DNA of 64,000 bases, taken from contig NW_025766225.1 of assembly GCF_003918875.1 (NCBI RefSeq), positions 124,001-188,000 of the forward strand, given 5' to 3'. The stretch's first letter is position 1, and each line of letters begins with the position of its first letter. Below are positions 1 to 33,155 of the stretch, in pieces. The notes below the pieces were generated by a model that was given only the letters and a program-made list of their open reading frames with translations, was not told the DNA's origin and did not search any database. This DNA is from Haliotis rubra. Lineage: Eukaryota. The translations under genes were made by a program, and so were the position numbers.

Positions 1-15
1 TGGCATTGAAATGAA

Positions 16-60
16 CGCTTCTTTTGAGAGAGATGGATGGCCCTGAAAAGGGCCGTTTTT
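16..60 (-). terminator. Histone-type 3' processing signal: stem-loop (54-39) plus purine-rich downstream element
   Basis: Minus strand reads AAAAAC-GGCCCT-TTTC-AGGGCC-ATCCA-TCTCTCT-CAAAAGAAG. This is the canonical 6-bp stem/4-nt loop bound by SLBP, with an ACCCA-like cleavage context and an HDE-like purine run about 13 nt downstream. Confidence 0.88.
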
Positions 61-71
61 TAGAGTGCACC

Positions 72-386
72 TCACTCCAGGGACCACAGTTGACATCTAC
101 ATTGGCAGGGATGGATGGTCATCTTTGTTTTCACGGGGCACTTGCTCCCATGAGTTAAACGCCTGATATAAGTGTCCTTCAAGACAGTGCCACAGTAGAC
201 ACATTGAAAGGTGGCATTGTACTCGATGGTGCCATTGGCGTAGACGGGCAGGCAGCCATAACATCGTTGGCACTGCCATGCCGGTAAGGGTGGTGATGCT
301 GTCTCCAAGGACATGAGTTCCAGATCCCAGTTTTCTCCAGACATGATTGCTGGTTGTAACACTGCTTCCGCCACCCCTCTCATCAT
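72..386 (-). CDS. Small intronless Cys/His zinc-finger protein A (non-histone) with a histone-type 3' end; probable true start is the ATG at 344 (90 aa, MSGENWDLELM...)
   Basis: Pattern CQRC-x19-CVYCG-x12-HGSKCP-x9-CQC, shared with the ORF at 604-1062. A TATATAT at 391-385 overlaps the first ATG, so Met15 (344) fits a TATA-defined start better. A histone stem-loop lies 17 nt after the stop. Confidence 0.72.
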   Translation of the reverse strand: MMRGVAEAVLQPAIMSGENWDLELMSLETASPPLPAWQCQRCYGCLPVYANGTIEYNATFQCVYCGTVLKDTYIRRLTHGSKCPVKTKMTIHPCQCRCQLWSLE

Positions 387-570
387 ATATAGTGAGAGCT
401 CACGATCATGACGTCACTGGTGCCACGTCATTACCCTCACGCGCGATCATGACGTCATCGATACCACGTCATTACCCTCACGCGCGACCATGACGTCATC
501 GATACCACGTCATCGATACCACGTCATCGACGACACGTCATCGCTGTCTCGTCGCCCATATATAAACTCC
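385..570. promoter_or_regulatory. Bidirectional promoter with opposed TATA boxes and a 41-bp-periodic array of CRE/ATF-type sites
   Basis: TATATAT at 391-385 (minus) and TATATAAA at 559-566 (plus). TGACGTCA at 409, 450 and 491; CCACGTCA at 423, 464, 505 and 519; ACACGTCA at 533. Confidence 0.7.
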
Positions 571-603
571 AGCATGGGTCAGTGAGGGCTATCTTCATGC
601 AAC

Positions 604-1062
604 ATGGATACAAGAAAAGTGGAAGTCATGCGACCGACGCCTTACAGGAAAAATTGCGGTAGACGGCAATGCTTGCGGTGCAGCCCTACCTTACAAGGGA
701 AGGCTGACATCAAAATGGAAGAGGCAGCAACAACACCTACAGAACCGATACCCACAACGGTAACAGCAGCGGCAGCCCCACCACCACCACCACCACCTAC
801 GACAGGAGACACGGTAGCGCCACCACCACCAACAACAACAACAACAACATTACCGAGATGGTCATCCAAATGGCGACTGATTATCTGCCCTACCTGTTTT
901 AAAGCCTATCCATCGAATCGCTTTGATGTCGTCCCAGGAGCTGACTTCTACATATGCCTCTACTGTGGGGAAGGCATCATCAAGAGAGGGCAACAGCAAC
1001 ACGATGATGTGTGCCCCGGAAAATTTATTTTTCGGGGTCTCCAACTCCTCTGTGAATGCTAA
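604..1062 (+). CDS. Intronless Cys/His zinc-finger protein B (152 aa, non-histone) with a Pro/Thr-rich linker and a histone-type 3' end
   Basis: TATA box 38 nt upstream. N-terminal MRPTPYR...CGRRQCLRC, a poly-P/T linker, then CPTC-x19-CLYCG-x10-HDDVCP-x11-CEC. The CxxC-x11-H-x3-CP part has TRAF-type C2HC spacing. A histone stem-loop lies 22 nt after the stop. Confidence 0.75.
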   Translation: MDTRKVEVMRPTPYRKNCGRRQCLRCSPTLQGKADIKMEEAATTPTEPIPTTVTAAAAPPPPPPPTTGDTVAPPPPTTTTTTLPRWSSKWRLIICPTCFKAYPSNRFDVVPGADFYICLYCGEGIIKRGQQQHDDVCPGKFIFRGLQLLCEC

Positions 1063-1080
1063 CCTGGCTGGTTCACATAC

Positions 1081-1122
1081 CAACGGCCCTTTTCAGGGCC
1101 ACCCACCTCGCTCGAAAGAAGG
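1081..1122 (+). terminator. Histone-type 3' processing signal: stem-loop (1085-1100), ACCCA and purine-rich downstream element
   Basis: CAAC-GGCCCT-TTTC-AGGGCC-ACCCA-CCTCGCTC-GAAAGAAGG matches the metazoan histone stem-loop consensus, with an HDE-like GAAAGA 14 nt after the stem. Confidence 0.92.
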
Positions 1123-1269
1123 CTACATCCAATGTTTTTAATCACACACACACACACACTTGTCTAGCCACGCAATCGTCCGCCTCACCCCTCTCCCTCC
1201 TTCCCTCCTTTCCTCTCCTTTCCTCATCTTCCCTTCCCTCTCCGTCCCGTCCCGTCCGCCGCTCGTCCG

Positions 1270-1556
1270 TTCCGCCATCTTGAAATGCGTCTACGCTCGC
1301 GAGATCCCGCGAGAGTCCACGAGATCCCGCGAGATCTCACGCGATCCCACCGGATGGGACGCCATCTTGAACCGCGTCCGCCATCTTGGCTCGGAAGTGA
1401 CGTCATCGTCATGCGCGCGAACCCACCGGAACCGGACGTGACGTCATCGCTATGCGTACGCACCCACCGGAACCGCAACCCGAGTGATCTCCCCTGATGG
1501 CGGCACATGGATCAAGATGGCGACGCCCATGGGGACCGGATGTGCCGCCATCTTGA
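1270..1556. promoter_or_regulatory. CpG-rich cluster of YY1, ETS-CRE and CGCG-box-like motifs
   Basis: CGCCATCTTG at 1273, 1360, 1379 and 1546, plus its reverse complement at 1513. CGGAAGTGACGTCA at 1392, TGACGTCA at 1439, and CTCGCGAGA/TCCCGCGAGA at 1296, 1305 and 1325. Confidence 0.55.
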
Positions 1557-1699
1557 AAAAAGACGCTAGGGTAACGCTGTTCACTACTAACGCCTACGAC
1601 ATCTGCGACCTTTGGCTGACAAGGCGACATGTAACTGCAATACAAGCAGCGTTAAACCTCATTTACTCGTCTAACCTCACTCACTCACTCGTTCATCAC

Positions 1700-3309
1700 T
1701 CCTGTAATCTCACTCACTCACTCACTCGCTTGTCCATCACTCCTCTAACCTCTCTCCCTCTCTCACTCGCTCATTCATCACTCGTCTAAAATCACTCACT
1801 CACCCAAACACCCATCTTCCACTCATACATGTCGTTTTAGTCAAGTTCACATGGTCAAATATTAAGCGGCAACAACTAACAACTTTTCTATTTCACTGTA
1901 ACAAAGGAATTAGGGGAAAATTATATACGAAATGATAAACTGTAGATCTACTTAACATTGAGTGAGTTAAAATGTTACGTCATATCAGCAATAATTCAGC
2001 CATATCGTCTACTTAACACAAAGTTGCAGTTTTATAGATTTCTCGGGCACGTTTACATCTGATTAAAAGTCATTCATTTTCCGACATGTTTGGCACAGAT
2101 TTTACAAGGGACTGATGAAAATTATAAGCAGTCACGTGAAGCGTGGGTCTGTACTAATGCCTATGAACGTAGGATATACATGGGAGTATTGTTTAATGCC
2201 GCTTTAGCACAATCAAGGCGGGGCCACAAAGTTTGGGCTTGAAACGTCGCATCCATGTGAGGTATCAAAACCTCTCAAGCAACATGACGACGAACACTTT
2301 AACCACAAGGCCCACCTGGCAATGGGGTGTCACTGTGCACAGCGCACCCTGAGAAACCAGGTGATATTGTATATAACGGACCCTATAGAAACGGGTGGCA
2401 ATGTACTTACCAGACCCTGACTTACGAAGTGACATTGTATGATACGGAACCTGACAAAACGGGTGGAACTGAACTTAGCACACCCTGACAAACGAAGTGA
2501 CATTGTATATAACGGAGCCTGACAAAGAGTCGTCACTGTACATAGCGGACCCTGAAAAACGAAGTGACATTGCATATAACTGAACCTGACAAAACGGGTG
2601 TCACTGTACATAGCGGACCCTGACAAACGAAGTGATATTGTATACGACTGAACCTGACACAAGAGATGTCACTTTTCTTAGTGGGCCCTGTCAAACGAGG
2701 TCTGATTGTATACAACGCAACCTGGTGAAACGGGGTCACCGCACTTAACGGACCCTCACAAACGAGGTGACATTGCATGTAATGGAAGTTGACAAAACGG
2801 GTGACACTGTACATAGCGGACCCTGACAAGCAAGGTGACATTGTACATAACAGAACCTGACAAAACGGGTGTCACTGTATATAGCGGACAATAACAAACG
2901 AAGTCACGGTGAATATAACGGATCCTGACAGAGGGTCGCCACTGTACATAGCGGAAACTGACAAACGAGGTGACATTTTATGTAACGGAACCTGACAAAT
3001 CGGGTGACACTGTGCATAGCGGACCCTGACTCACGAGGTCTGGTTGTATATAACGGAACCTGAGAAAACGAAGGTTACTGTACATAGCGGACGATCACAA
3101 ACGTGTTGACATTGTATATAACGGAACCTGACAAAACGGGTGACACTGGATATATCGGACCCTGAGAAACAAGGTGGCATTGTATATAACAGAACCTGAC
3201 AAAACGGATGTCACTGTACACAACGGACCGTGACAAACAAGTGTGTGACATTTCGTGACGAGAACAAATTAGACGTTTATAAACAATATGTACAGATTAT
3301 AAAACCTGT
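1700..3309 (+). repeat. Left arm of a long inverted repeat (pairs with 4157-5606)
   Basis: 3241-3309 is the reverse complement of 4157-4225, 1830-2320 mirrors about 4940-5435, and the outer end TCCTGTAATCTCACT (1700) mirrors AGTGAGATTACAGGA (5606). Confidence 0.9.
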
Positions 3310-3490
3310 ACAAACCTGTACAAACTGTGGCAAACAAGGTGACATTGTATATAACGGAACCTGACAAAACGAGTGTCACTGTACACAGCGGACCCTGCCA
3401 AACGAGATGGTATTGTATTATAACGGAACCTGACAAAACGGGTGCCACTGTACTTAACGGACCCTGCCAAACGAGATGGCATTGTACATA
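2325..3490 (+). repeat. Minisatellite with a 34-bp monomer arranged as a 68-bp dimer
   Basis: Alternating units GTGACATTGTATATAACGGAACCTGACAAAACGG and GTGTCACTGTACATAGCGGACCCTGACAAACGAG; interrupted at about 3241-3330. Confidence 0.85.
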
Positions 3491-4156
3491 ATGGAAAGAG
3501 TACGATTGATGCAGATGTGCTCACTGCGTTGAAAAACAACAACAATATATTCTCACATTGTTCTTCAGTAAATTAATGAGTATATTTCATCTGTCGAAAT
3601 ATCCTTATCTGTCACCTCGTGACGTGACAAACGGAACATATGACGTCTATCACGTCACGAGATGGCAGATACACCATACTTCACGTAAACCATTCTATTG
3701 TTGTAATTTTGATCAACTAAATTTAAAGAATATTAATCAGAGAAACCTAGATCAAGTATATCCAAATTCTCCAAACTGTAAACTAAAGACTCAAAGGGGG
3801 TTGAAGTAGGCCTACTGTAAAATCATTGTCCTCCTGAGAGGATAAATGCCCAAATCATTCTAGGTAAATTAAGTTCTTCCAAACTTTTAATCGTAGTATA
3901 TTTGTTCTTTTTGATAATGGCTAAAACACAATCGCCAGCAGCTGAAGGGATGGTGTAAATCCAGCTAGGGTCCATGCAGGTAGCAAAAGAGCTGTAAGTC
4001 CCCATGGACCCTTGTATGGTGACCTACTGTCAGTTGTTAGCGGCCTATAGCCTGTTTATATATTATGTATTGTCCATGTGGTGCTATTAGTTTTAATTTT
4101 ACATTCTAGTTTTAATTCTACCAGTGATAGTTTAGTTGTTTTACTGTAATTGGAGG

Positions 4157-5606
4157 ACAGGTTTTATAATCTGTACATATTGTTTATAAACGTCTAATTT
4201 GTTCTCGTCACGAAATGTCACACACTCGTTTGTCAGGGTCCGTTGTGTACAGTGACATCCGTTTTGTCAGGTTCCGTTATATACAATGTCAACACGTTTG
4301 TGATCGTCCGCTATGTAAAGTTACCTCTGTTTTGTCAGGTTCCGTTATATACAATCAGACCTCGTGAGTCAGGGTCCGCTATGCACAGTGGCGACCCTCT
4401 GTCAGGATCCGTTATATTCACCGTGACTTCGTTTGTTATTGTCCGCTATATACAGTGACACCCGTTTTGTCAGGTTCTGTTATGTACAATGTCACCTCGC
4501 TTGTCAGGGTCCGCTATATACAGTGTCACCCGTTTTGTCAACTTCCATTACATGCAATGTCACCTCGTTTGTGAGGGTCCGTTAAGTGCGGTGACCCCCG
4601 TTTCGTCAGGTTCCGTTGTATACAATCAGACCTCGTTTGACAGGGCCCACTAAGTAAAGTTACATCTCTTGTGTCAGGTTCAGGTGTATACAATATCACT
4701 TCGTTTGTCAGGGTCCGCTATGTACAGTGACGACTCTTCGTCAGGTTCCGTTATATACAATGTCATCTCGTTTGTCAGGGTGTGCTAAGTTCAGTTCCAC
4801 CCGTTTTGTCAGGTTCCGTATTATACAATGTCACTTCGTAAGTCAGGGTCCGGTAAGTACATTGCCACCCGTTTCTACAGGGTCCGTTATATACAATATC
4901 ACCTGGTTTCTCAGGGTGCGCGGTACACACTGACACCCCATTGCCAGGTTGGGCCTTGTGGTTAAAGTGTTCGTCGTCATGTTGCATGAGAGGTTTTGAT
5001 ACTCCACATGGATGCAACGTTTTAAGCCCAAACTTTGTGGCCCCGCCTTGATTGTGCTAAAGCGGCATTAAACAATACTCCCATGTATATCCTACGTTCA
5101 TAGGCATTAGTACAGGCACACGCTTCACGTGACTGCTTATAATTTTCATCAGTCCCTTGTAAAATCTGTGCCAAACTTGTCGGTAAATGAATGACTTTTA
5201 ATCAGATGTAAACGTACTCGAGGAAATCTATAAAACTGCAACTTTGTGTTAAGTAGACGATATGGCTTAATTATTGCTGATATGACGTAACATTTTAACT
5301 CACTCAATGTTTAGTAGATCTACAGTTTATTATTTCGTATATAATTTTTCCATAATTCCTTTGTTACAGTGAAATAGAAAAGTTGTTAGTTGTTGCCGCT
5401 TAATATTTGACCATGTGAACTTGACTAAAACGACATGTGAGTGAGTGAGTGAGTGAGTGAGTGAGAGGGAGGAAGCAAGCGAACAGGAAGATGGGTGTTT
5501 GGGTGAGTGAGTGATTTTAGACGAGTGATGAACGAATGAGTGAGAGAGTGAGAGAGGTTAGGGGAGTGATGGACAAGCGAGTGAGTGAACAAGTGAGATT
5601 ACAGGA
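4157..5606 (-). repeat. Right arm of the long inverted repeat (pairs with 1700-3309)
   Basis: High-identity reverse complement of the left arm, with fewer satellite units. Confidence 0.9.
4225..4935 (-). repeat. Same 34/68-bp minisatellite in inverted orientation
   Basis: Reverse-complement units such as CCGTTTTGTCAGGTTCCGTTATATACAATGTCAC. Confidence 0.85.
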
Positions 5607-7633: not shown

Positions 7634-8402
7634 AATCGCTCACCTCCACTCAACTCAGCTTCATTGCACTATTCTCCGCTCACGTACACTCAACTTCAAC
7701 TCAGGTCCAATACTCTATTCTCCGCTCACCTCCACTCAACAGAGTTCCAATGCACTAAACCCCGCTCAACTCCACCCAAGTCAGCTCCAATACACTATGC
7801 TCCGCTCACCCCACTCAACTCAATTCCAATGCGCTATACTCCGCTCACCTCCACTCAACTCAACTCCAATGAACCATACTCCGGACACCTCCATTCAACG
7901 GAACTCAAATGCACTATACTCCGCTCACCTCCACTCAACTGAATTGCACTGTACACCGCTCAGCTCCATTCAACTCACCTCGCCTCCAATGCACTATACT
8001 TCGCTCACCTCCACTCAACTCATCTGCAATGTACGATACTTCGATCACCTCCATTCAACTAAACGCACATGCACTATACACCGCTCATCTCCAGAGGTGT
8101 CCGGAGTATAGTGCATTGGAGTTGAGTTGAGTGAAGGAGAGCAGAGTTTTGTGGATTGGAGTTGAGTTTAGTGGAGGTGAGCGGAGTATATTGCATTGGA
8201 GCTGAGTTAAAGATGAATTGAATTGAGCGGAGTATAGTGCATTGCGGTGGAGTAGAGTGAAGGTGAGCGAAGTACAGTGCATCGGAGTTGAGTTGAGTGA
8301 AGGTGAGCGGAATGTAGTGCATTTCAGTTGAGTGGAGGTGAGCATTGTTTAGTTCATTGGAGCTGAGTTGAATGGAGGTGACCGAAGCATAGTGCATTGC
8401 GG
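7634..8402. repeat. 40-bp minisatellite that switches orientation at about 8091-8100
   Basis: Unit CCGCTCACCTCCACTCAACTCAACTCCAATGCACTATACT up to about 8090, then its reverse complement. Confidence 0.85.
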
Positions 8403-9840: not shown

Positions 9841-12800
9841 GGAGGCATGGAGGTTTGGAGGCATGGGGACTTTGAGCCATGGGGACTTGGAGGCTGAGGC
9901 ATGGAACATGGACACTTGGAGGTTTGGAAGATTGGAGACGAGGCATGGGGACTTGGAGGCTTGGAGACTTTGAGGCCTGTGGATATGGAGGCGTGGAGGC
10001 TTGGGGGCATGGGGACTTGGAGGCATGGGGACTTGGAGGCTTGGAGGCATGGGTATTTGGAGGCATGGGTGCTTGGAGGCATGGGGACATGGAGGCATGG
10101 GGACTGGAGGCTTGGAGGTTTGGGGGGCACGGGGACATGGGGATATGGAGGTATGTAGACATGGGGACTTGGAGGTTTGGAGGCATGAGGACATGGAGGC
10201 TTGGAGACTGCCAGGCTTCCAGACATGGAGGCTTGGAGGCATGGATACTTGGAGGCTAGGAGGCATCGGGACATGGAGTGTTGAAGACTTGGAGGCTTGG
10301 AGACTTGGAGACTTGGAGGCGTGGAGGCGTGGAGGCGTGGAGGCGTGGAGGCTTGGAAACTTGGTTGCTTGGATGCTTAGAGGCTTGAAAGCATGGAGAC
10401 TTAGAGGCATGGGGACATGGAGACTTGGAGGCATGTTGATATGGAGGCGTGGAAGCTTGGGGGCATGGGGACTTGAAGGCATGGGGATTTGAAGGCTTGG
10501 AGGCATGGAGACTTGGAGGCATGGGGATTTGGAGGCTTGGAGGCTTGGAGGAATAGGGACTTGGGGGCTTGGAGGCATGGGGACGTGGAGGATTGGGGAC
10601 ATGGAGGTTTGGAGGCATCGGGACAAGGCTTGGAGCCATGGGGACTTGGATGCTTGGAGGCATGGGTATTTTGAGGCATGGGTGCTTGGAGGCATGGGGA
10701 CATGGAGGCATGGGGACTGGAGGTTTGGGGGCGTGGGGACATGGGGATATGGAGGTATGTAGACATGGGGACATGGAGGCTAGGAGGCATGCGGACATCG
10801 AGGCTTGGAGGCATGGGGACATGGGGACATGGAGGCTTGGACGCTTGGAGGCTTGTATTCGTGCTGACATGGAGGCTTAGAGGCTTGCAGGCATGGGGGC
10901 ATCGGGATTTGGAGGCATGGAGAATTAGCGGCATGGACTTGGAGGCTTGGAGGTTTGGAAGCATGCAAACATGGAGGCTTGAAGGAATGGGGACATTGAG
11001 GCTTGGAGGTATGGGGACATGGAGGCTCTGAGGCTTGGAGGCATGGGGACATTGAGACTTTGAGGCTTGGACTCGTGGGGACATGGAGGCTTGGAGGCTT
11101 GGAGCCATGGGGACTTCGAAGCTTGGAGGCATGGGGAATTGAAGGCATGGGGACTGGAGGCTTGGAGGCTTGGAGGCTTGGAGGCTTGGAGGCTTGGGGG
11201 CATGGGGCCATGGAGGAATGGAGAAATGGGGCCATGGAGGAATGGAGACATAGGGACTTGGAGCTTTGGAGACATGATGACATGGAAGCTTGGAGACTTG
11301 GAGGATTGGAAACTTGGTTGCTTGGAGGCTTGGAGGCTTGAAGGCATGGAGACGTGGAGGCATGGGGTCATGGAGGCTTGAAGGCAAGGGGACTTGGAGG
11401 CTTGTAGACTTGGATGCATTGGGACTTGGATGCTTGGAGGCATAGGGACATGGAAGCTTGGAGGCTTGGAGCAATGCGAACATGGAGGCTAGGAGGCATG
11501 GGGACATTGAGGCTTTGAGGCCACGGAGGCTTGGAGGCTTGGAAACTCGGTTGCTTGGAGGCTTGGAGGCTTGAAGGCATGGAGCCTTGGAGGCATGGAG
11601 ACATGGGGGCATGAGATCTTGGAGGCTTAGAAGCTTAGAGGCATAGGGACATGGAGTCTTGGAGGCTTGGAGCCATGGTGACTTGGAGGCTTGGAGACAT
11701 AGTGGCTTGGACGTTTGGAGGCATGGAGACATGGGGACATTGAGGCTTAGAGGCTTGGAGGCATCGGGACATGGAGGCTTCGAGACTTGGAGGCTTGGAG
11801 ACTTGGAGACTTGGAGGCGTGGAGGCGTGGAGGCTTGGAAACTTGGTTGCTTGGATGCTTAGAGGCTTGAAAGCATGGAGACTTAGAGGCATGGGGACAT
11901 GGAGACTTGGAGGCATGTTGATATGGAGGCGTGGAAGCTTGGGGGCATGGGGACTTGAAGGCATGGGGATTTGAAGGCTTGGAGGCATGGAGACTTGGAG
12001 GCATGGGGATTTGGAGGCTTGGAGGCTTGGAGGAATAGGGACTTGGGGGCTTGGAGGCATGGGGACGTGGAGGATTGGGGACATGGAGGTTTGGAGAGCA
12101 TCAGGACAAGGCTTGGAGCCATGGGGACTTGGATGCTTGGAGGCATGGGTATTTTGAGGCATGGGTGCTTGGAGGCATGGGGACATGGAGGCATGGGGAC
12201 TGGAGGTTTGGGGGCGTGGGGACATGGGGATATGGAGGTATGTAGACATGGGGACATGGAGGCTAGGAGGCATGCGGACATCGAGGCTTGGAGGCATGGG
12301 GACATGGGGACATGGAGGCTTGGACGCTTGGAGGCTTGTATTCGTGCTGACATGGAGGCTTAGAGGCTTGCAGGCATGGGGGCATCGGGATTTGGAGGCA
12401 TGGAGAATTAGCGGCATGGACTTGGAGGCTTGGAGGTTTGGAAGCATGCAAACATGGAGGCTTGAAGGAATGGGGACATTGAGGCTTGGAGGTATGGGGA
12501 CATGGAGGCTCTGAGGCTTGGAGGCATGGGGACATTGAGACTTTGAGGCTTGGACTCGTGGGGACATGGAGGCTTGGAGGCTTGGAGCCATGGGGACTTC
12601 GAAGCTTGGAGGCATGGGGAATTGAAGGCATGGGGACTGGAGGCTTGGAGGCTTGGAGGCTTGGAGGCTTGGAGGCTTGGGGGGCATGGGGCCATGGAGG
12701 AATGGAGAAATGGGGCCATGGAGGAATGGAGACATAGGGACTTGGAGCTTTGGAGACATGATGACATGGAAGCTTGGAGACTTGGAGGATTGGAAACTTG

Positions 12801-15800
12801 GTTGCTTGGAGGCTTGGAGGCTTGAAGGCATGGAGACGTGGAGGCATGGGGTCATGGAGGCTTGAAAGCAAGGGGACTTGGAGGCTTGTAGACTTGGATG
12901 CATTGGGACTTGGATGCTTGGAGGCATAGGGACATGGAAGCTTGGAGGCTTGGAGCAATGCGAACATGGAGGCTAGGAGGCATGGGGACATTGAGGCTTT
13001 GAGGCCACGGAGGCTTGGAGGCTTGGAAACTCGGTTGCTTGGAGGCTTGGAGGCTTGAAGGCATGGAGCCTTGGAGGCATGGAGACATGGGGGGCATGAG
13101 ATCTTGGAGGCTTAGAAGCTTAGAGGCATAGGGACATGGAGTCTTGGAGGCTTGGAGCCATGGTGACTTGGAGGCTTGGAGACATAGTGGCTTGGACGTT
13201 TGGAGGCATGGAGACATGGGGACATTGAGGCTTAGAGGCTTGGAGGCATCGGGACATGGAGGCTTCGAGACTTGGAGGCTTGGAGACTTGGAGACTTGGA
13301 GGCGTGGAGGCGTGGAGGCGTGGAGGCTTGGAAACTTGGTTGCTTGGATGCTTAGAGGCTTGAAAGCATGGAGACTTGGAGGCATGGGGACATGGAGACT
13401 TGGAGGCATGTGGATATGGAGGCGTGGAGGCTTGGGGGCATGGGGACTTGGAGGCATGGGGATTTGAAGGCTTGGAGGCATGGGGACGTGGATGCTTGGG
13501 GACATGGAGGCTTGGAGGCTTGGAGGCATCGGGACGAGGCTTGGAGGTTTGGAGCCATGGGGATTTGGAGCAATTGCGACTTGGAGACTTGGAGGCATGG
13601 GGACTTGGAGGCTTGGAGGCATGGGTATTTTGAGGCATGGGTGCTTGGAGGCATGGGGACATGGAGGCATGGGGACTGGAGGCTTGGAGGTTTGGGGGCA
13701 CGGGGACATGGGGATATGGAGGTATGTAGTCATGGGGACTTGGAGATTTGGAGGCATGAGGACATGGAGGCTTGGAGGTTTGGGGACATGGAGGCTTGGA
13801 GACTGCCAGGCTTCCAGACATGGAGGCTGGGAGGCATGGATACTTGGAGGCTAGGAGGCATCGGGACATGGAGGCTTGGAGACTTGGAGGCTTGGAGACT
13901 TGGAGACTTGGAGGCGTGGAGGCGTGGAGGCGTGGAGGCGTGGAGGCTTGGAGGCTTGGAGGCTTGGAGGCTTGGAAACTTGGTTGCTTGGATGCTTAGA
14001 GGCTTGAAAGCATGGAGACTTAGAGGCTTGGGGACATGGAGACTTGGAGGCATGTGGATATGGAGGCGTGGAGGCTTGGGGGCATGGGGACTTGGAGGCA
14101 TGGGGATTTGAAGGCTTGGAGGCATGGAGACTTGGAGGCATGGGGATTTGGGGGCTTGGAGGCTTGGAGGAATAGGGACTTGGGGGCTTGGAGGCATGGG
14201 GACGTGGAGGCTTGGGGACATGGAGGTTTGGAGGCATCGGGACAAGGCTTGGAGCCATGGGGACTTGGATGCTTGGAGGCATGGGTATTTTGAGGCATGG
14301 GTGCTTGGAGGCATGGGGACTTGGAGGCTTGCAGACTGCCAGGCTTGCAGACATGGAGGCTTGGAGGCATTGGGACATGGAGGCTTGGAGACTTGGAGAC
14401 TTGGAGGCAAGGGGACATGGAGGCTTGGAGGCATGGGGACTTGGAGGCTTGGAGATTTGGAGGCATGTATACATGGGGACATGGAAGCTTGGAGGCTTGG
14501 AGGCTTGGAGGCTTGGGGGCTTGGGGGCATGGGGACATGGAGAAATGGAGAAATGGGGCCATGGAGGAATGGAGACATGGGGACTTGGAGCTTTGGAGGC
14601 ATGAGGACATGGAAGCTTGGAGACTTGGAGGCTTGGAAACTTGGTTGCTTGGAGGCTTGGAGGCTTGAAGGCATGGAGACGTGGAGGCATGGGGTCATGG
14701 AGGCTTGAAGGCAAGGGGACTTGGAGGCTTGGAGACTTGGAGGCTTGGAGACGTGGAGGCATGGGGACATGGAGGCTTCGAAGCATGGGGACATGGAGGC
14801 TTGGAGGCTTGGAGCCATGGAGGCTTTGAGGTTTGGAGGCATGCGAACATGGAGGCTTGGAAGCATGGGGACATTGAGGCTTGGAGGTATGGAGACATGG
14901 AGGCTCTGAGGCTTGGAGGCATGGGGACTTGGAGGCTTCGAAATTTGGAGGCAAGGAGACTTGGAAGCTTGGAGACTTGCAAGGTTGGAGGCTTGGAGAC
15001 TTGGAGACTTGGAGGCATGGGAATTTGGAGGCTTCGAAGTTTGCAGGCATGGGGACTTGGAGGCCTGGAGACTTGTGGCTTGGAGGTTTGGAGGCATGGG
15101 GACTTGGAGGCTTACAGACTGCCAGGCTTGCAGACATGGAGTCTTGGAGGCATGGAGACTTGGAGGCTAGGAGGCATTAGGACATGGAGGCTTGGAGACT
15201 TGTGGGCTTGAAGGCTTGGATGCATGTAGACTTGGAGGCGTGGAGGCTTGGAAACTTGGTTGCTTTGAGGCTTGGAAGCTTGAAGGCATGGAGACTTGGA
15301 GGCATGGGGACATGGAGGCTTGGAAGCATGGAGACATGGAGGCTTGGAGGTATGGAGACATGGAGGCTCTGAGGCTTGGAGGCATGGGGACTTGGAGGCT
15401 TCGAGATTTGGAGGCAAGGAGACTTGGAAGCTTGGAGACTTGCAAGGTTGGAGGCTTGGAGACTTGGAGACTTGGAGGCATGGGAATTTGGAGGCTTCGA
15501 AGTTTGCAGGCATGGGGACTTGGAGGCCTGGAGACTTGTGGCTTGGAGGTTTGGAGGCATGGGGATTTGGAGGCTTACAGACTGACAGGCTTGCAGACAT
15601 GGAGTCTTGGAGGCATGGAGACTTGGAGGCTAGGAGGCATTAGGACATGGAGGCTTGGAGACTTGTGGGCTTGAAGGCTTGGATGCATGTAGACTTGGAG
15701 GCGTGGAGGCTTGGAAACTTGGTTGCTTTGAGGCTTGGAAGCTTGAAGGCATGGAGACTTGGAGGCATGGGGACATGGAGGCTTGGAAGCATGGGGACTT

Positions 15801-16220
15801 GGAGGCTTGGAGGCATGGAGACATGGAGGCTTGGAGACATGGAGGCATTGAGGCATTGGGACATTGAAGCTTTGAGGCCATGGAGGCTTGGAGGCTTGGA
15901 GCCATGGGGACTTCGAGGCTTGGGGGCATGGAGGCATGGGGACTTGGAGGCTTGGAGACTTAGGGGCTTGGAGGTTTGGAGGCATGGAGGCAAGGAGGCA
16001 TAGAGGCTTGGATACTTGGAGGCTTGGAGGCATGGAGACATGGAGGCTTGGAGACATGGGGACATGGAAGATTGGAGGCTTGGAGCCATTGGGACTTGGA
16101 GGCTAGGAGGCTTCGAAGCATGGGTACATGGAGGCTTGGAGGCATGGGGACATGGATGTTTGGAGGCATGGGGACTTGGAGGCTTGGAGACTTGGAGACT
16201 TGGAAACTTGGAAGCATGGG
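9841..16220 (+). repeat. G-rich 8-9-bp satellite (GGAGGCTT/GGAGGCAT/GGGGACAT) with higher-order duplications of about 1.48 kb and 463 bp
   Basis: Continuous degenerate octamer array. Diagnostic variants recur at an offset of about 1483 (e.g. CTTGTATTCGTGCTGAC near 10852 and 12335) and at an offset of 463 (TTACAGACTG near 15112 and 15575). Confidence 0.95.
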
Positions 16221-16568
16221 AGTAGTATATACACTGGGGGTACGAGATAAAGTTCAGCAAAAGCCTCTGTAAAGCTTCATTCACTAAATACAGCTTTTGT
16301 CAGGCCCTTATCTCTCTCCGCTATTTTATATACCAGGTTTGAACCCCCTGTTAACTTCCTGGTCACTATGACCGCGAACCAAAACTTTCCTGATCACGTG
16401 ACACTATGTCGTGTTGACCTCGAGGAAACAGTTGGTTACAGGATACTATTGGGATTACTCGACAAGGTAAGTGTTAAATATTTTGCTTGGGGGGTAACAT
16501 TGTGCTGTGATTCCTCTCTGGCGGCGGCTCGTGGCTGCCCTACATGATGTTGATCTCAGCAAAACAGT

Positions 16569-17189
16569 TTAACGTGAATCTCCTATGATTTCTTTGGTTT
16601 TCATAATTGAGGCTTGCTGGGCTTGTTGTATCCCCTGTTCTATGTACTTTTTTGGCTCGTCTTCGCTGACGGCAGTTTTACGAGACTTGTTTCGAATCTC
16701 TCGTTTCATTTCATGATATTTTGTGAGTTGGGAGAGGACCAAACGAAACTCTTCCTCTGAGATTTTATTGTCAGTGAGTGCGGTGGAAATATGGTCGTCT
16801 ATGGTGTTTAACTTCGCATCGGCTAGGATCCTGATCTCGTCGTGTTTCAATGCCTTACGATGCAGTCTGCGTGACACAAACTTAAACACCAATCCAGCCA
16901 ACCCTGACACCCCAGCTGTTATTTCGATGCCTAGCACTACGGGTGCGGCTACGATGGTGGTCAACAACCCCACACCTACTGCCCTTAACCCCATACTGGT
17001 AGCCATAAGGGTGGTATCAACCCCATCCACGACATTGAAAGCTCTATGGTACTTCTTGTACAATGCTGCCCGTGTGTCGCGGTCTTGTTCTAGTTGGCAT
17101 TTTACGTCCACATAACTGTTTCAATCGAAACCCGTCCTCACGGTTTCCAGTGTCTTAGCTACTACCTCTACGACTGGGTACAGCCCCAT
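16569..17189 (-). CDS. Polinton membrane-hairpin/coiled-coil protein (~205 aa in the A/B consensus), copy A
   Basis: MGLYP...FRLKQL...LYKKYHR, two hydrophobic segments, KHDEIRILADAKLNTI and an EF-hand-like DNKISEEEF. Frameshifts near 17110-17140 are absent from copy B. Confidence 0.7.
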
Positions 17190-17388
17190 CCTGTGCGTAT
17201 AATATATACTACAAGATATTTTTTAATTGGGCTTCATATAATAGTCGATCAATGTACTTGAGGCTTATAAGGCCTACGTGCCCATGTAGGTGAATAGTGG
17301 AACGGTCAATAGGTCACTCTTGTTCTATACTAACTATATGGTTGCTTATTAAGGGGGGCAGCAACCCCGGTGAGGGTTCCGAGCTCCG

Positions 17389-17957
17389 TCATATGACGAT
17401 ACGACAATGGCGGTCTGTAAATGGATATGAATGTGGCAATCTTATTTCCACCCCAGGTAAAAGGTGCCAGGGGGGAACCACCCCCTCATCAATATCGTCT
17501 CTGAAAAAGAATTCTATGATGAATGTGGAGCCTGGGGGCATAACCATAGAATATAATAGGCCAGCATATAATCGAAATGATAAACGTGTATAACTGGATG
17601 CATTTAACATGTAGCCCGGGCGATTTGGTGTTTGGGGAAACTCTTATACTCTGAAAGTTTGGGGGTGAAACGCCGAGCAAGATACCGTTGTTCTTAATTT
17701 CGGTGATATAACTAGTGATAGGACCATCCACCCTTGGGAAAGAAACGTAAGGTGTGGTGAGGGTCATGTTGATCAACCATTTGGGCTCTCTAAAGTCCCG
17801 AGTGTGATGTTGGGCCAATGATCGGGCATTGCGCCCGTCTATACGTTGTCTTTCAAGTGTAGGACGTTACAAAGTCTTCCTGCGCCGGGCAGATCGAACC
17901 CTTCCGTGTTTCCTAGGTGCGTTAAAGCGTGGCGTTGGGCCGATGATGATTGGACAT
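17389..17957 (-). pseudogene. Fibre/spike-like protein 2, copy A (frameshifted)
   Basis: Equivalent of 31555-32127. Confidence 0.5.
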
Positions 17958-17970
17958 TGCTATAATACTA

Positions 17971-18946
17971 TTACAAGATAGTTTCCAATTGTTTTCTGAT
18001 AACCTCTCAAGGGTGCACTTCAACACCATGAGGTGTATGTTGTCGGTAGGAAGATCTTGGTGAGGGATATCGTGTCTTCCACGGTCATGGTGACCCCTTG
18101 CAGACTGGTGTGGGAGTCGACACCCACCCGCTGCGTAAACAGTGTAAGCGTGATACTGGTGCTGTTTCACCCACGGTTTGATTCCCTTCACGACTTCGAC
18201 TTAGTCCTGCGATGGCAAGCGTGGAATTTGCTGGTAGACCTTCCAGGATTTTGACCACACCGGCGAATTCAGACACCAACTGCAATGTCACGGCTTGCAC
18301 TCCGGTTTACTTTCGATAGCATGTGGGCCGCCATACTTGAGAGTGGGCTGATGATTATGCTCGTCTCCAGCGACCGGGATGTAAGCCACGAGCATGGTTC
18401 CGTTGTTCACGACTTTGTTTAGGTAGTTGTCTTTGTTCTCGTGAACACGTATGGGGAGCCGAGACTAATGTTGAGAAACCAATCCACTCGAGAGGGTAAC
18501 AACACCCACTTGTCATAGTCGGTGAAGACGAGCGTATACTGCTTGTTTCGAGCAACGGTCGTGCTCTCAACATCTTCTAGGTCGAACAGTTTGCCTTCAA
18601 ACGATGGGTATACCGCCCATCTATCATCACCGATGCGGACTAGGTCGAACTGAGTGTTGAGGGCCGCTCCTGAGGTATCTACTATCTCACCTAGGGTTCT
18701 ACCGATGGAGGAGACTTCAACGCGTTTGTAAATACTGTTTTTAAGCTGCAAGGCGTAAAGTTTACCATCTACTCCGGGGTCGTCGAACCCGCGTGTGTCC
18801 CCAAGGTCGGAGATCCCCACATTGATGCATTTTTTCAACCTCATTCCAGGACCTTGTGCGCTAGTCATTTTATGTGCAGCGTTATGCTGAGGTATCCTAT
18901 ATTCACAGGATTCACCGCTCATTATTCCTGGAAGTGTTACGTACAT
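17971..18946 (-). pseudogene. Fibre/spike-like protein 1, copy A (frameshifted)
   Basis: Equivalent of 32141-33118; LxDLxD repeats. Confidence 0.5.
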
Positions 18947-18982
18947 GTTAGAGCATATATACCCATTATATAATACTTTAAA

Positions 18983-20601
18983 ATGTACAAACCGGGAGTG
19001 TTTTTACCCTAAAATGGACATAGATTTCCCTTTATGAAGATCATGGTCGTTGGCCGGCTGGGTTATATATCGGAGCCCAGTTCATAGATGTGTTCGACCG
19101 GTATAAGCTTTTTGTGACTAACGTCAAGGCAGTCCACGCCTGGTTCAACACCCTATGCTGTTCTGGCAGAATCAACTTAACTTAGCCGTCTGGTGTCGCG
19201 ACGACTGGGTGTGGCTTGACATTGACCGACACTCGTCGGGGACCGCTGAGTCAGTCTGTGTTCACGTTTCACGTGTACTACCAGGTCAGGCGTATCCTCA
19301 AAGAGATCAGCGCTCCGCTCCCACAGGACAAAGCATGGGGCGCAGTAAACAACCCGTGCGATAGAAGCGGGCCCTCGACTGACGCAGCGTTTGCAATGAA
19401 TTCGAACTAGACCCGAAGACGGATTGGCCTTTGTCGGGCCCGAACCACGGGTTGGGTATCCCCATCGTTCACAACATGCCCCTCGTGGAAGCCAGCGAAA
19501 AGATGAAAGAATGGGGGTACAAGTCGTATCATCACATCACAACAAACGAGTGGGATGACCGTTACATGGCTTTCAACAACAGCAAGGATTACTGAGTCTG
19601 GAGGTTCGAGCAGGGGCCCGCGGATGACTGGAAAAAGTTCATGCTGGACACGTAGAGAGGGTTCACTCGTGCCGGCACCGAACGCTTGAACGACTCGATT
19701 CGAACGTACGTGTGGGCGCTGTTGGGTGGGCAGACACAAACGCGTTCCAACATCCTCGGTTAGGGGACTGCTTACGACACTCAGAAACTGTTCGTTGCTA
19801 ATGTCGAGGATGCCATCGCCACCCCGGTCGACCTGCCGAGTGCCATCAAACACTACCAAAACGTATTGACCGCCTCCGTGGTGTAGTGGTTAGAGCGTCC
19901 GCCCGGAGAGCGGAAGGTCACGGGTTCGATCCCCGACCGCGTCATACCAAAAGACGTTAAAATATGGTACTTGTTGGTTCCTGCCTGGCGCTCGGCATTA
20001 ATGGGTACAACAAGGACTGGTCGGCTCGGAGTCAGTATAATGTGTCTGAGGGGGGTATTCATGCTTCACTGCGGCATCGTATCTCAGTGGGCTAGCACTA
20101 TAAAACCAGCTTAAGTCTGGGCTAGTACAAGCAGCCGCACACACACATACACACGCATGCCCGTCGTCATATGAGCGAAATATTCTCAAGCACGACGTTA
20201 AACCCAATTTCACCTCACCTCACCTCACCTCACCTCACCAAAACGTATTGGAATACGCCCAAAGTCTAAAAATCGACTCGTCTTCGACATGGGACTGTAT
20301 ACATGTCCCGACGATCACAACTGAGGAAGCAAAAGCAGGTGGGCTACAACAACGAAATAGTTATAGCCCGCGGCCGACCAAGTTGAATTGTCAATGCAGG
20401 CATCAACGTGGTCACGTCCCACCTCCCAGGGTGAAACGGTTATAGTCGTACCACCCCCGAAGCTCAGGAGTTCAACCCACACCAACACAGCCCCTGCCAC
20501 AACACCGGGTGGCTGAAAATAACGAACACATCGATCGTAAAACAGCGCTGGTGGTTGGCGGGATCGCTCGGTTTGGGTCTCATTGGTTAAAAATTCCTTA
20601 G
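18983..20601 (+). pseudogene. Conserved Polinton protein of unknown function with a C-terminal TM anchor, copy A; SINE-interrupted
   Basis: Equivalent of 33156-34764. Confidence 0.65.
19869..20236 (+). mobile_element. tRNA-derived SINE (family 2) with a (CACCT)n tail and a 14-bp TSD
   Basis: A box TGGTGTAGTGG, B box GGTTCGATCCC; TSD ACCAAAACGTATTG at 19855-19868 and 20237-20250. Confidence 0.92.
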
Positions 20602-24499: not shown

Positions 24500-27400
24500 A
24501 GCATGGAGGTTTGGAGGCATGGGGACTTTGACCATGGGGACTTTGGAGGCTGAGGCACGGAAACATGGACACCTGGAGGTTTGGAAGATTGGAGACGAGG
24601 CATGGGGACTTGGAGGCTTGGAGATCCCTTGAGGCCTGTGGACATGGAGGCGTGGAGGCTTGGGGCATGGGGACCTGGAGGCATGGGGACCCTGGAGGCC
24701 TGGAGGCACGGGTATTTGGAGCGCATGGGCGCTTGGAGGCATGGGGACATGGAGGCATGGGGACTGGAGGCCTGGAGGTTTGGGGGGCACGGGGACATGG
24801 GGACATGGAGGCATGTAGACACGGGGACCCTGGAGGTTTGGAGGCACGAGGACATGGAGGCTTGGAGACTGCCAGGCTCCAGACATGGAGGCCTGGAGGC
24901 ATGGGATACCCCTGGAGGCTAGGAGGCATCGGGACATGGAGCATGAAGACACCCGGGAGGCAGGAGACGGAGACTTGGAGGCATGGAGGCGTGGAGGCGT
25001 GGAGGCGTGGAGGCTTGGAACCTTGTTTAGCTTGGATGCTTAGGGAGGCTTGAGCATGGAGACTTAGAGGCATGGGGACATGGGGACTTGGAGGCATGCT
25101 GATATGGAGGTGCGGAAGGGGGGGCATGGGGACCTTGAAGGCATGGGGATTTGAAGGCATGGAGGCATGGAGACCTGGAGGCATGGGGTTTGGAGGCTTG
25201 GAGGCTTGGAGGAACAGGACCAGGGGCCTTGGAGGCATGGGGACGTGGAGGATTGGGGACATGGAGGTTTGGAGGCATCGGGACAAGGCTTGGAGCCATG
25301 GGGACCGGATGCTTTGGAGGCATGGGGTATTTTGAGGCATGGGTGCTTGGAGGCATGGGGACATGGAGGCATGGGGACCGGAGGTTTGGGGGGCGTGGGG
25401 ACATGGGGATGGAGGTATGTAGACATGGGGACATGGAGGCTAGGAGGCATGCTGGACATCGAGGCTTGGAGGCATGGGGACATGGGACATGGAGGCTTGG
25501 ACCTTGGAAAACTGTATCTGATGCTGACATGGAGGCTTAGGAGGCTTGCAGGCATGTGGGCATCAGGATTTGGAGGCATGGGAGGAGTAGGCATGGACGG
25601 AGGCTTGGAGGTTTGGAAGCATGCAAACATGGAGGCTTGAAGGAATGGGGACATTGAGGCTTGGAGGCATGGGGACATGGAGGCCCCTGGAGGCCTGGAG
25701 GCATGGGGACAATGAGACTTTGAGGCTTTGGACCGTGGGGACATGGAGGCTTGGAGGCTTGGAGCCATGGGGACCCCGGAAGCCTGGGAGGCATGGGAAC
25801 TGGAAGGCACGGGGACCGGAGGCTTGGAGGCTTGGAGGCTTGGAGGCCTTGGAGGCTTGGGGCATGCTGGGCCATGGAGGAATGGAGAAAATGGGGCCAT
25901 GGAGGAACGGGAACATAGGCACTTGAGCTTTGGAGACATGATGACATGGAAGCTTGGAGACTTGGAGGATTGGAAACTTGGTTGCTTGGAGGCTTGGAGG
26001 CTTGAAGGCATGGAGACGTGGGAGGCATGGGGTCATGGAGGCTTGAAGGCAAAGGGACTGGGAGGCTTGTAGACTTGGATGCATTGGGACTTGGGATGCT
26101 TGGAGGCATAGGGACATGGAAGCTTGGAGGCTTGGAGCAATGCGAACATGGAGGCCAGGAGGCATGGGGACATTGAGGCTTTGAGGCCACGGAGGCTTGG
26201 AGTGCTTGGAGGCCGGCTGCTTGGAGGCTTGGAGCCGAAGGCATGGAGCCTTGGAGGCATGGAGACATGGGGCACGAGATCTTGGAGGCTTAGAAGCCAG
26301 AGGCATAGGGACATGGAGTCCTGGAGGCTTGGAGCCATGGTGACTTGGAGGCCCTGGAGACATAGTGGCTTGGACGTTTGGAGGCATGGAGACATGGGGA
26401 CATTGAGGCTTAGGAGGCTTGGAGGCATCGGGACATGGAGGCCCAAGAGACTTGGAGGCTTGGGAGACTTGGAGGACTTGGAGGCGTGGAGGCGGAGGCT
26501 TGGAAACTTGGTTGCATGCTTAGAGGCCGGAAAGCATGGAGACCTAGAGGCATGGGGACATAAGGAGACTTGGAGGCATGTTGATATGGAGGCATGGAAG
26601 CACTTGGGGGCACGGGGACTCAGAAGGCATGGGGATTTGAAGGCCTGGAGGCATGGAGACCCTGGAGGCATGGGGATCGGGAGGCTTGGAGGCCGGGAGG
26701 AATAGGGACTTGGGGGCTTGGAGGCATGGGGACGTGGAGGACTGGGGACATAAGGAGCCTTGGAGGCAATCGGGACAAGGCCTTGGAGACCCATGGGGAC
26801 TTGGATGCTTGCTGGCATGGCATGGAGGCACGGGTGCCAAGGCATGGGACACGGAGGCACGGGGACTGGAGGTCTTGAGGGGCGTGGGGACATGGACATG
26901 GAGGTATGACATGGGACATGGAGGCACGGACATCGAGGCTTGGAGGCATGGGGACATGGGACACGGAGGCCGGAGGCCAGGATTCGTGCCGACATGGAGG
27001 CTTAGAGGCCTTGCAGGCATGGGGGCATCGGATTTGGAGGCATGGAGAATTAGCAGCATGGACTTGGAGGCCAGAGGTTTGGAAGCAGGCGCAAACACGG
27101 AGGCCGGAAGGAACGGGACACTGAGGCCTGGAGGCATGGGGACACGGAGGCTCTGAGGCTTGGAGGCATGGGGACATGAGAGAGGCTTGGACTCGTGAGG
27201 ACACGGAGGCTTGGAGGCCTGGAGCCATGGGGACCCCAAGCTTGGAGGCATGGGGAATTGAAGGCATGGGGACTGGAGGCCGGGAGGCTTGGAGGCTTGG
27301 AGGCTTGGAGGCTTGGGGGCATGGGGCCATGGAGGAATGGAGAAATGGGGCCATGGAGGAATGGAGACATAGGGACTTGGAGCTTTGGAGACATGGATGA

Positions 27401-32127: not shown

Positions 32128-32140
32128 TGCTATAATACTA

Positions 32141-33118: not shown

Positions 33119-33155
33119 GTTAGAGCATATATACCCATTATATAATACTTTAAAA

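Follow-up and report, generated by a model that had tools for sequence, protein, structure and literature searches.

The left end of the stretch of DNA analysed here (the window: 64 kb of Haliotis rubra contig NW_025766225.1, RefSeq assembly GCF_003918875.1, positions 124,001 to 188,000 of the forward strand) contains two small intronless genes that diverge from a shared, TATA-flanked promoter rich in ACGTCA (Table 1). The listed ORF of the left gene begins with an ATG that lies inside its TATA box; hence, the ATG at 344-342 (Table 1) is the likely start. In both genes the TATA box lies 38-41 nt before the ATG, so the 5' UTRs are very short. Each gene is followed in the sense orientation, 17 and 22 nt after its stop codon, by the same 16-mer hairpin, GGCCCTTTTCAGGGCC, which is succeeded by an AYCCA flank, 8 pyrimidine-rich bases and a purine run starting 13-14 nt after the stem. 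The features described in the original prediction were confirmed.

Table 1. Coordinates of the gene pair, its signals and related features. Window positions count from its first letter; L011 is a metagenome contig that carries the left-type relative.
Sequence	Feature	Position	Strand	Remarks
Window	Histone-type 3' end signal of the left gene	14..59	-	Match to Rfam RF00032
Window	Purine-rich downstream element, left gene	18-25	-	AAAAGAAG
Window	ATCCA flank, left gene	34-38	-	
Window	Hairpin, left gene	39-54	-	GGCCCTTTTCAGGGCC
Window	Left gene (L type)	72..344	-	90 aa plus stop; likely start at the ATG at 344-342; short acidic N-terminus followed by the presumed two-zinc domain
Window	Left ORF as listed	72-386	-	First ATG at 386-384
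Window	TATA box of the left gene	385..391	-	41 nt upstream of the ATG at 344
Window	Shared promoter core	403..548		Three 41-nt repeats followed by 14-nt repeats, holding 3 TGACGTCA and 5 CACGTCA
Window	TATA box of the right gene	559..566	+	38 nt upstream of the ATG at 604
Window	Right gene (R type)	604..1062	+	152 aa plus stop; Thr/Pro-rich, probably disordered N-terminal half followed by the presumed two-zinc domain at the very C-terminus
Window	Histone-type 3' end signal of the right gene	1080..1125	+	Match to Rfam RF00032
Window	Hairpin, right gene	1085-1100	+	GGCCCTTTTCAGGGCC
Window	ACCCA flank, right gene	1101-1105	+	
Window	Purine-rich downstream element, right gene	1114-1122	+	GAAAGAAGG
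Window	Short block ending in CAATG	1126..1136	+	Recurs at about the same distance after the purine element in the left gene (about 4-14 on the minus strand) and in L001/L011
Window	ORF sharing an MRPTPYR N-terminus with the right protein	37729-38091		
Window	Mobile-element debris	38-39.7 kb		
Window	rve fragment	39353-39514		Cut by a satellite
L011	Pox_A32-type ATPase	34-747		
L011	rve integrase	2211-3251		

The exact 16-mer occurs twice and only twice in the 64-kb window, even when 2 mismatches are allowed, against a chance expectation of 0.04, and none of 100 shuffles gave 2 matches. A scan with the Rfam Histone3 covariance model (RF00032) scored the left site at 34.0 bits, equal to the gathering score of 34, and the right site at 33.0 bits, 1 bit under it (E 3.5e-7 in the local scan). 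Each folds as a 6-bp stem with a 4-nt loop (-11.4 kcal/mol), with G-C at the second pair and U at loop positions 1 and 3. The hairpin of the right gene together with ACCC is identical to the mouse H4-12 RNA that binds human SLBP in vitro as a competitor (PMC1635294). The two 3' regions are 90% identical over 40 nt and 85% identical over 47 nt. Further, no AATAAA, ATTAAA, AGTAAA or TATAAA was found in the 438 nt after the right stop or in the 71 nt visible after the left stop. The short block that follows the purine element might be an extension of the 3' signal, but as it was seen in only four sequences the evidence for this is weak.

Examination of the promoter calls for one correction to the original prediction of a histone-mimic expression cassette, whose divergent layout was said to resemble H2A-H2B or H3-H4 pairs: the shared promoter shows no histone-type elements that we could recognize, and has no CCAAT box. 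It consists instead of the repeats listed in Table 1, and all five TGACGTCA of the window lie within its first 1.5 kb.

Searches with the Pfam models recovered neither a histone domain nor any other domain in either protein. Comparison of the two revealed that they are paralogs (28-30% amino-acid identity), which share eight invariant Cys/His ligands in a presumed two-zinc domain of roughly 60 residues. Word-indexed protein searches with each ORF alone, exact look-ups of both ORFs and of two neighboring ORFs of the window, scans of a viral contig collection with two profiles and with two neighbor proteins of the related locus L001 (see below), and a first metagenome scan all found nothing. A second metagenome scan returned three loci, each of which proved to be a 14-residue chance match inside a bacterial membrane protein. 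In contrast, a profile search of 1.84 billion protein representatives recovered four genuine relatives, the proteins P0001, P0002, P0003 and P0005, with e-values of 3e-11 to 3e-7, and P0006 was added by a further search; an additional hit, P0004, is a C2H2-repeat protein matched by five short stretches and was set aside. These define two subfamilies that correspond to the left and right genes, namely a short L type and an R type with a disordered N-terminal half. The left protein is 46-51% identical to P0001, P0003 and P0006, with all 8 ligands conserved, whereas the right protein is 39-43% identical in the domain to P0002 and P0005, which have the same architecture. Both subfamilies share the pattern C-x2-C-x4-P-x13/14-C-x-Y-C-x11/13-H-x3-C-x11/13-C-x-C. 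The window holds one gene of each subfamily, head to head. As this divergent layout is not seen in the relatives, its likeness to H2A-H2B pairs is probably a by-product of an inverted duplication and not a copied histone-locus design.

We next examined the selection acting on these genes. Codon positions 1+2 are 52-86% identical against 28-63% at position 3 in every pair, and comparison of the related loci L004 and L006 gave a dN/dS of 0.135/1.07 (about 0.13), indicating purifying selection. This bears on the possibility that the locus is a degraded histone gene pair whose coding sequences have drifted beyond recognition, for which only the divergent layout and the 3' signals speak. Given that there is no histone-like ORF in any frame, that the promoter lacks a CCAAT box, and that the two ORFs are homologous to each other and to a conserved non-histone family under purifying selection, this explanation is refuted. 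Alternatively, the pair might be a silent relic, a dead fragment of an integrated element whose ORFs and signals happen still to be intact. The satellite-rich surroundings, which hold other fragments of mobile elements such as the rve fragment cut by a satellite, and the absence of the exact proteins from any gene call or assembled transcript of the collection searched are in its favor. However, both ORFs are open with all eight ligands kept, and both TATA boxes, both perfect hairpins and both downstream elements persist despite the divergence of the two copies, which is hard to reconcile with neutral decay. We therefore regard this alternative as unlikely.

To determine whether the 3' signal is a general feature of the family we analyzed the DNA following the related genes. 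The closest relatives (46-50% amino-acid identity, with synonymous sites saturated) carry the same 16-mer, the same spacing and a similar purine element: Histone3 scores 33.9 bits 27 nt after the stop in L001, L002 and L010, and 30.0 bits in L011, loci that carry the L-type relative, and CAAAAGAGAG sits at the same distance from the stem in L001 and L011, the 12-nt distance from stem to CAAAAGA being the same as in the left gene. The 3' signals of the two window genes are far better conserved than their coding sequence. Among the R-type relatives, L005 has a 14/16 variant of the hairpin 24 nt after its stop, for which we estimate the probability of a chance occurrence within 60 nt at about 2e-5. 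On the other hand, L006, a left-type relative, has only a half relic, and L003 and L004 have no hairpin. Hence, of the six distinct relatives two lack the signal and two more have only a variant or a half relic, showing that it is not obligatory for the family.

The L-type relative sits on gene-dense marine metagenome contigs, on which L011 codes for an rve integrase (50.5 bits; cut-off 32.6) with a weak chromodomain match (E 9e-4, 19.6 bits, below the curated cut-off of 25.1), a Pox_A32 packaging ATPase (28.3 bits; cut-off 22.8) and a BIR protein (81 bits). A neighboring 167/168-aa protein gave no Pfam hit, but its L001 copy matches the CE-clan cysteine protease S273R in the PDB (E 1.3e-3), suggesting that it might be a CE-clan protease. 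The 455-aa and 316-aa ORFs upstream of it, which are the positional candidates for capsid proteins, have no Pfam hit; the 455-aa ORF, the only one of them searched against the PDB, has no sequence hit there, and the C-terminal fragment in L001 also gave nothing. This gene complement points to a Maverick/Polinton/adintovirus-like element, although the class is not fully established as the L010 and L011 contigs are incomplete (6.4 and 8.3 kb) and lack the DNA polymerase gene and the ends; three assemblies stop within about 35 nt of each other after the last ORF. Among the 13 genes of L011 and 9 of L010 only the zinc-finger gene is followed by the hairpin. The BIR gene has an AATAAA 27-28 nt after its stop and in L010 the last ORF has one at +142, while in L011 the contig ends at that ORF. 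Nevertheless, L010 and L011 also have an AATAAA about 117 nt after the stop of the zinc-finger gene, which could act as a back-up or as the real signal.

In the window itself no core gene of such an element adjoins the pair in the DNA that could be seen, which begins at position 1. Translated searches with L001-L006 and L010-L012 matched only the two zinc-finger genes and a distant rve fragment, 38 kb away, that is related to the L010/L011 integrase (e-value 3e-5), and the 37 kb to the right of the pair holds satellites and unrelated ORFs. The MRPTPYR N-terminus shared by the right protein and an ORF near the mobile-element debris is treated as chance, as profile comparison gave a probability of only 4%. 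Additionally, the CpG observed/expected ratio is 0.40 and 0.69 in the two coding regions against 1.0 in L010/L011. While the samples are small, this hints that the window copy is an old germline resident and not a recent integration.

These observations leave room for a rival scenario, in which a lineage-restricted cellular gene pair of the host acquired histone-type 3' ends for germline, embryonic or S-phase expression, and the virus-like elements captured one member, signal included, from a host. Consistent with this, the pair has no element genes next to it in the window, the CpG depletion is as expected for long germline residence, the R-type relatives L003 and L005 are on short contigs with no viral neighbor visible, and virus-like elements often pick up host genes such as BIR (PMC8502044). 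However, the family is absent from the 5.8-billion and 1.84-billion protein collections that we searched except for five metagenome or raw-assembly contigs, which is odd for a conserved animal gene. Moreover, the only copies with readable context are inside a virus-like element, L006 is also gene-dense with the next ATG following within about 50 nt, and the compact TATA-to-ATG geometry and missing introns are the style of the element's accessory genes. Accordingly, we consider this scenario unlikely, though less so than that of a silent relic.

We favor, with moderate confidence, the interpretation that the two genes belong to a small, previously unnamed family of zinc-finger accessory genes of Maverick/Polinton/adintovirus-like DNA elements of marine animals, which has replaced the usual poly(A) signal with the host's replication-dependent histone 3'-end signal. 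The suggestion in the original prediction that the cassette possibly came from a virus or mobile element is borne out, and every part of its interpretation that is amenable to sequence analysis held up, including that these are non-histone zinc-binding proteins with histone-type stem-loops. The window copy would be either the end of an integrated element that continues to the left, or an endogenised remnant that has kept intact ORFs and signals. We infer, in the absence of transcript data, that RNA polymerase II starts about 10-15 nt before each ATG, driven by the TATA boxes and the ACGTCA (CRE/ATF-like) repeats, that SLBP binds the hairpin, that U7 snRNP pairs with the purine element, and that CPSF73 cuts after the AYCCA flank; no U7 gene was found in the window. 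The resulting mRNA would lack poly(A) and would be made, translated and destroyed in step with histone mRNAs, that is in S phase, or be stored in oocytes and early embryos where SLBP is plentiful. For an element that must replicate or integrate in a dividing nucleus this would time a small zinc-finger regulator to host DNA synthesis. More tentatively, these might be the first non-histone and the first virus-associated mRNAs with histone-type ends, giving the element a ready-made switch that ties such a regulator to host S phase or to the maternal mRNA store, with a signal that would be ancestral to both subfamilies and therefore old. Histone mRNAs are described as the only known cellular mRNAs with this end (PMC4604434), a view on which transcriptome annotation and poly(A)-selected RNA-seq both build, and we found no precedent for non-histone or viral mRNAs with histone stem-loops in the literature that we could search. 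A conserved non-histone family with the full signal would break this rule and supply natural reporters for what the histone 3' end alone contributes to expression timing. It would also be a new case of a DNA element taking over a host RNA-processing pathway to couple its gene expression to host DNA replication, and may explain why such genes are missing from poly(A)-based gene catalogues.

With respect to known systems, the second half of the domain (F/Y-x-C-x2-C-x11/13-H-x3-C) has the spacing of classical beta-beta-alpha C2H2/C2HC zinc fingers. While structure prediction from the two-sequence alignment was uninformative (pLDDT 44), an AlphaFold model from seven sequences (mean pLDDT 64.8) places a hairpin (26-28, 35-37) and a helix (40-49) around C29, C32, H46 and C50. 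The best PDB profile hits are such fingers, including the dual zinc finger of a nairovirus Gn cytoplasmic tail (PDB: 2l7x), and Foldseek hits are mostly C2H2 fingers, but all are weak (E 0.06 or worse by sequence and above 0.3 by fold). The outer C-x2-C and C-x-C pairs, which presumably hold a second zinc, have no counterpart in those fingers. A relationship to RING fingers was not supported: the two-sequence profile gave only a weak hit to the RNF144A RING1 (E 0.015), the alignment of which leaves two RING ligands unmatched, and the hit disappeared with the six-sequence profile.

Adintoviruses are reported to carry IAP homologs and small paired-CXXC accessory proteins, the 'Oncoid' candidates (Starrett et al. 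2021, PMC8502044). Like the accessory genes of adintoviruses, Mavericks and Polintons, the L-type relative is a small intronless gene with its own TATA box and paired CXXC motifs, which lies beside a BIR/IAP gene at one arm of an element carrying an rve integrase, an A32-type ATPase and the possible CE-clan protease. The family differs from the 'Oncoid' candidates in that there is no conserved LXCXE motif; the left protein has none and the single one in the right protein (LYCGE) lies in the zinc knuckle and is not kept in P0002 or P0005. There is also no sequence match to any named family, and a histone-type 3' end is not mentioned for any adintovirus gene in that paper, where the one occurrence of 'histone' concerns a methyltransferase. 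With the replication-dependent histone genes of metazoans the pair shares the geometry of stem and loop, an A-rich 5' flank, the AYCCA 3' flank, the purine-rich element 13 nt after the stem, the position shortly after the stop codon, the lack of introns, a very short 5' UTR, a TATA promoter and no poly(A) signal nearby. It differs from them in that the products are zinc-finger proteins and not histones, that the promoter lacks recognizable histone elements, and that the stop-to-hairpin distances of 17 and 22 nt are at the short end of the usual range (median 30 nt; bioRxiv 10.64898/2026.10.14.759114).

To understand the organization of this locus we first examined the two intronless ORFs that point away from each other within the first 1.13 kb of the window (coordinates of these and other features are collected in the table below). 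The longest version of the left ORF begins with an ATG that lies inside its own TATA box; hence, a downstream ATG is the likely start, giving a protein of 90 aa. In both genes the TATA box is positioned 38-41 nt before the ATG, which implies 5' UTRs of roughly 10-15 nt. The region between the two genes is occupied by three 41-nt repeats and further 14-nt repeats, with 3 TGACGTCA and 5 CACGTCA motifs, and all five occurrences of TGACGTCA in the 64-kb window lie within its first 1.5 kb. A second promoter-like module, to which no ORF could be assigned, is found to the right of the right gene: it has two 41-nt repeats with TGACGTCA next to CCGGAAGTG, inverted relative to the repeats of the shared promoter, along with four 10-nt CGCGAGATCC-type repeats and all five GCCATCTTG/CAAGATGGC of the window.

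Coordinates of the features of the window and of the contigs carrying relatives of the two genes (positions refer to the window unless a contig is named)
Feature	Position	Strand	Remarks
Left ORF, as listed	72-386	minus	
Left gene, likely start codon	344-342	minus	coding region 72-344
TATA box of the left gene	391-385	minus	
Right gene	604-1062	plus	152 aa
TATA box of the right gene	559-566		
Hairpin of the left gene	39-54	minus	16-mer GGCCCTTTTCAGGGCC
Hairpin of the right gene	1085-1100	plus	16-mer GGCCCTTTTCAGGGCC
CAATG block, right gene	1126-1136		
CAATG block, left gene	about 4-14	minus	
CAATG block, contig L001	about 2090-2096		
CAATG block, contig L011	about 7768-7774		
Second promoter-like module	1270-1560		two 41-nt repeats at 1392-1473
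Two arrays of a 34/68-bp repeat	2314-3496 and 4225-4921		inverted orientation around about 700 bp of unique DNA
Three large arrays of an 8/16-bp satellite	9841-16219, 24976-30387, 39586-46918		strong GC skew
46-bp satellite	47066-54544		about 7.5 kb
Duplicated segment of several kb	16500-19950 and 30800-34110		near-identical ORFs
Identical tRNA-like sequence in the duplicated segment	19872-19944 and 34033-34105		tRNA model 31 bits
Cys-rich ORF	37729-38091		120 aa
Mobile-element debris	38283-39661		
ORF containing the rve fragment	39203-39661		runs into the 8/16-mer satellite
rve integrase fragment matched by tblastx	39353-39514		
Motif next to TATA boxes of accessory genes, contig L001	1700-1740, 2190-2215, 2660-2690		TAGATACCGT-like
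Tandem repeats after the zinc-finger gene, contig L003	1075-1374		about 100-110 nt
Tandem repeats after the zinc-finger gene, contig L004	425-637		about 100-110 nt
Contig ends	L001 2781, L010 6373, L011 8295		

Examination of the sequence following each gene revealed that the 16-mer GGCCCTTTTCAGGGCC occurs exactly twice in the window, even with two mismatches allowed, against 0.04 occurrences expected by chance. Each copy is in the sense of the gene it follows and starts 17 or 22 nt after the stop codon. The Histone3 model of Rfam scores them at 34.0 bits, which equals the gathering score, and 33.0 bits. After each stem come ATCCA or ACCCA, eight pyrimidine-rich bases and a purine run (AAAAGAAG or GAAAGAAGG), so the geometry is the same in both genes. 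Moreover, the hairpin plus ACCC equals the mouse H4-12 RNA that competes for human SLBP (PMC1635294), and no variant of the poly(A) signal occurs in the 438 nt after the right stop. The original prediction had described a divergent pair of non-histone zinc-finger genes that each end in a histone stem-loop followed by a downstream element; this observation is thus confirmed and is far beyond chance.

Searches with Pfam recovered no domain in either protein, and in particular no histone fold. The two proteins align with 28-30% identity over about 65 residues, and every cysteine of the domain is shared. Upon adding relatives to the alignment, ten columns are invariant, eight of which are possible zinc ligands, with the pattern C-x2-C-x4-P-x13/14-C-x-Y-C-x11/13-H-x3-C-x11/13-C-x-C. 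An AlphaFold model based on seven sequences (pLDDT 64.8) places a beta hairpin and a helix around the inner C-x2-C...H-x3-C, which is the shape of a classical zinc finger. The profile hits in the PDB are weak and are to such fingers (best e-value 0.06), while fold searches gave nothing significant. Zinc finger is a fair description, but the domain belongs to no named family. A Cys-rich ORF elsewhere in the window begins with MRPTPYR, like residues 9-15 of the right protein; however, profile comparison does not support homology between them (probability 4%).

While word-indexed protein searches found nothing, a profile of the two domains run against 1.84 billion representatives recovered four real relatives, and a later profile search added a fifth. 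Three of these proteins, namely P0001 (80 aa), P0003 (68 aa) and P0006, resemble the left gene with 46-51% identity (L type). The other two, P0002 (177 aa) and P0005 (158 aa), resemble the right gene with 39-43% identity in the domain and share its Ser/Thr/Pro-rich N-terminal half (R type). Thus, the window holds one member of each of two old subfamilies. In every pairwise comparison codon positions 1+2 are much better conserved than position 3, which is near saturation, and for the closest pair dN/dS is 0.135/1.07. These are real genes under purifying selection, and the alternative that the locus is a decayed histone locus is excluded. A silent relic is unlikely, given the intact ORFs, ligands, TATA boxes and signals in two copies that have diverged to under 30% identity.

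We then asked whether the relatives keep the signal, a test that had been put forward with the original prediction. The L-type P0001 gene, which is found on contigs from three samples (L001, L002 and L010), has the same 16-mer 27 nt after the stop (Histone3 33.9 bits), and a 94% identical variant from a fourth sample (contig L011) shows one loop change (30.0 bits). In these four intact cases the distance from the stem to CAAAAGA is 12 nt, the same as in the left gene of the window. The R-type contig L005 has, 24 nt after the stop, a hairpin differing at two positions, of which one keeps pairing as G-U and one is in the loop, followed by AATAAA; this hairpin falls below the reporting level of Rfam. 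The L-type contig L006 retains only the 5' half of the element, whereas L003 (R type) and L004 (L type) have none, with tandem repeats directly following the zinc-finger gene. The signal is present in both subfamilies and has been lost or eroded in some members. It is identical or nearly so between copies whose synonymous sites are saturated, which argues for selection on the signal itself. Additionally, a CAATG block recurs 17-19 nt after the start of the purine element in the two window genes, L001 and L011, although this is not a described part of the histone 3' signal.

Analysis of the gene context of the relatives showed that L011 (8.3 kb) encodes, on one strand and tightly packed, an A32-type packaging ATPase (28.3 bits, above the cut-off) and an rve integrase (50.5 bits, above the cut-off) with a weak chromodomain match below the cut-off. 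It further codes for ORFs of 316, 112 and 455 aa without matches, and for a 167-aa protein followed by a BIR protein, the zinc-finger gene with its hairpin, and a last ORF. The L001 copy of the 167-aa protein matches a CE-clan viral cysteine protease in the PDB (e-value 1.3e-3). This gene set is that of Maverick/Polinton/adintovirus-like elements, even though the class is not fully proven as the polymerase and the ends are not on the contigs. Adintoviruses are reported to carry IAP homologs and small paired-CXXC accessory proteins (PMC8502044). Of the 13 and 9 genes examined on L011 and L010 respectively, only the zinc-finger gene is followed by the hairpin. In contrast, the BIR gene has AATAAA 27-28 nt after its stop, and the last ORF has one at +142 in L010, while in L011 the contig ends at that ORF. 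Three assemblies from different samples (L001, L010 and L011) end within about 35 nt of one another after the last ORF, which hints that the zinc-finger gene lies near a terminus or a repeat boundary. A TAGATACCGT-like motif recurs next to the TATA boxes of the accessory genes of the element in L001, and the promoter repeats of the window contain GATACCACGT, but the likeness is slight.

In the window itself no core gene of such an element adjoins the pair on the right, the left side lying outside the window. A tblastx search of all the fetched contigs against the window matched only the two genes and a distant rve fragment. This fragment (25 bits, below the cut-off) is distantly similar to the integrase of L010/L011 and is part of a stretch of mobile-element debris, which also includes an ORF with repeated Rho_N/SAP-like motifs (61.5 bits). 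Beyond this, the window contains satellite arrays and a duplicated segment with a tRNA-like sequence that has several mismatched pairs and is perhaps a SINE head. The CpG observed/expected ratio is 0.40 and 0.69 in the two coding regions, as against 1.3-1.4 in the promoter and in 1131-1810, and 1.0 in L010/L011. Though these are small samples, they hint at long germline residence of the window copy. An alternative in which a host gene pair was later captured by the elements appears doubtful but remains possible.

Histone pre-mRNAs are processed with SLBP on the hairpin, the U7 snRNP on the downstream element, and CPSF73 cleavage between them (PMC1635294; bioRxiv 10.64898/2026.10.14.759114). 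By inference from this established system, both genes would give short, intronless mRNAs without poly(A), whose synthesis, translation and decay follow those of histone mRNAs. For an element that replicates or integrates in dividing nuclei, or passes through the germline, this would tie a small zinc-finger regulator to the S phase or to the maternal store. Its neighbor in the element is an apoptosis-inhibitor homolog, and its R-type partner carries a long, probably disordered region; we very tentatively guess that the protein is a nucleic-acid- or protein-binding regulator. In the literature searched we found no report of a non-histone or virus-associated gene with a histone-type 3' end, and the present case rests on sequence without transcript evidence. 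The processing machinery is known, and it is its use by this family that would be new.
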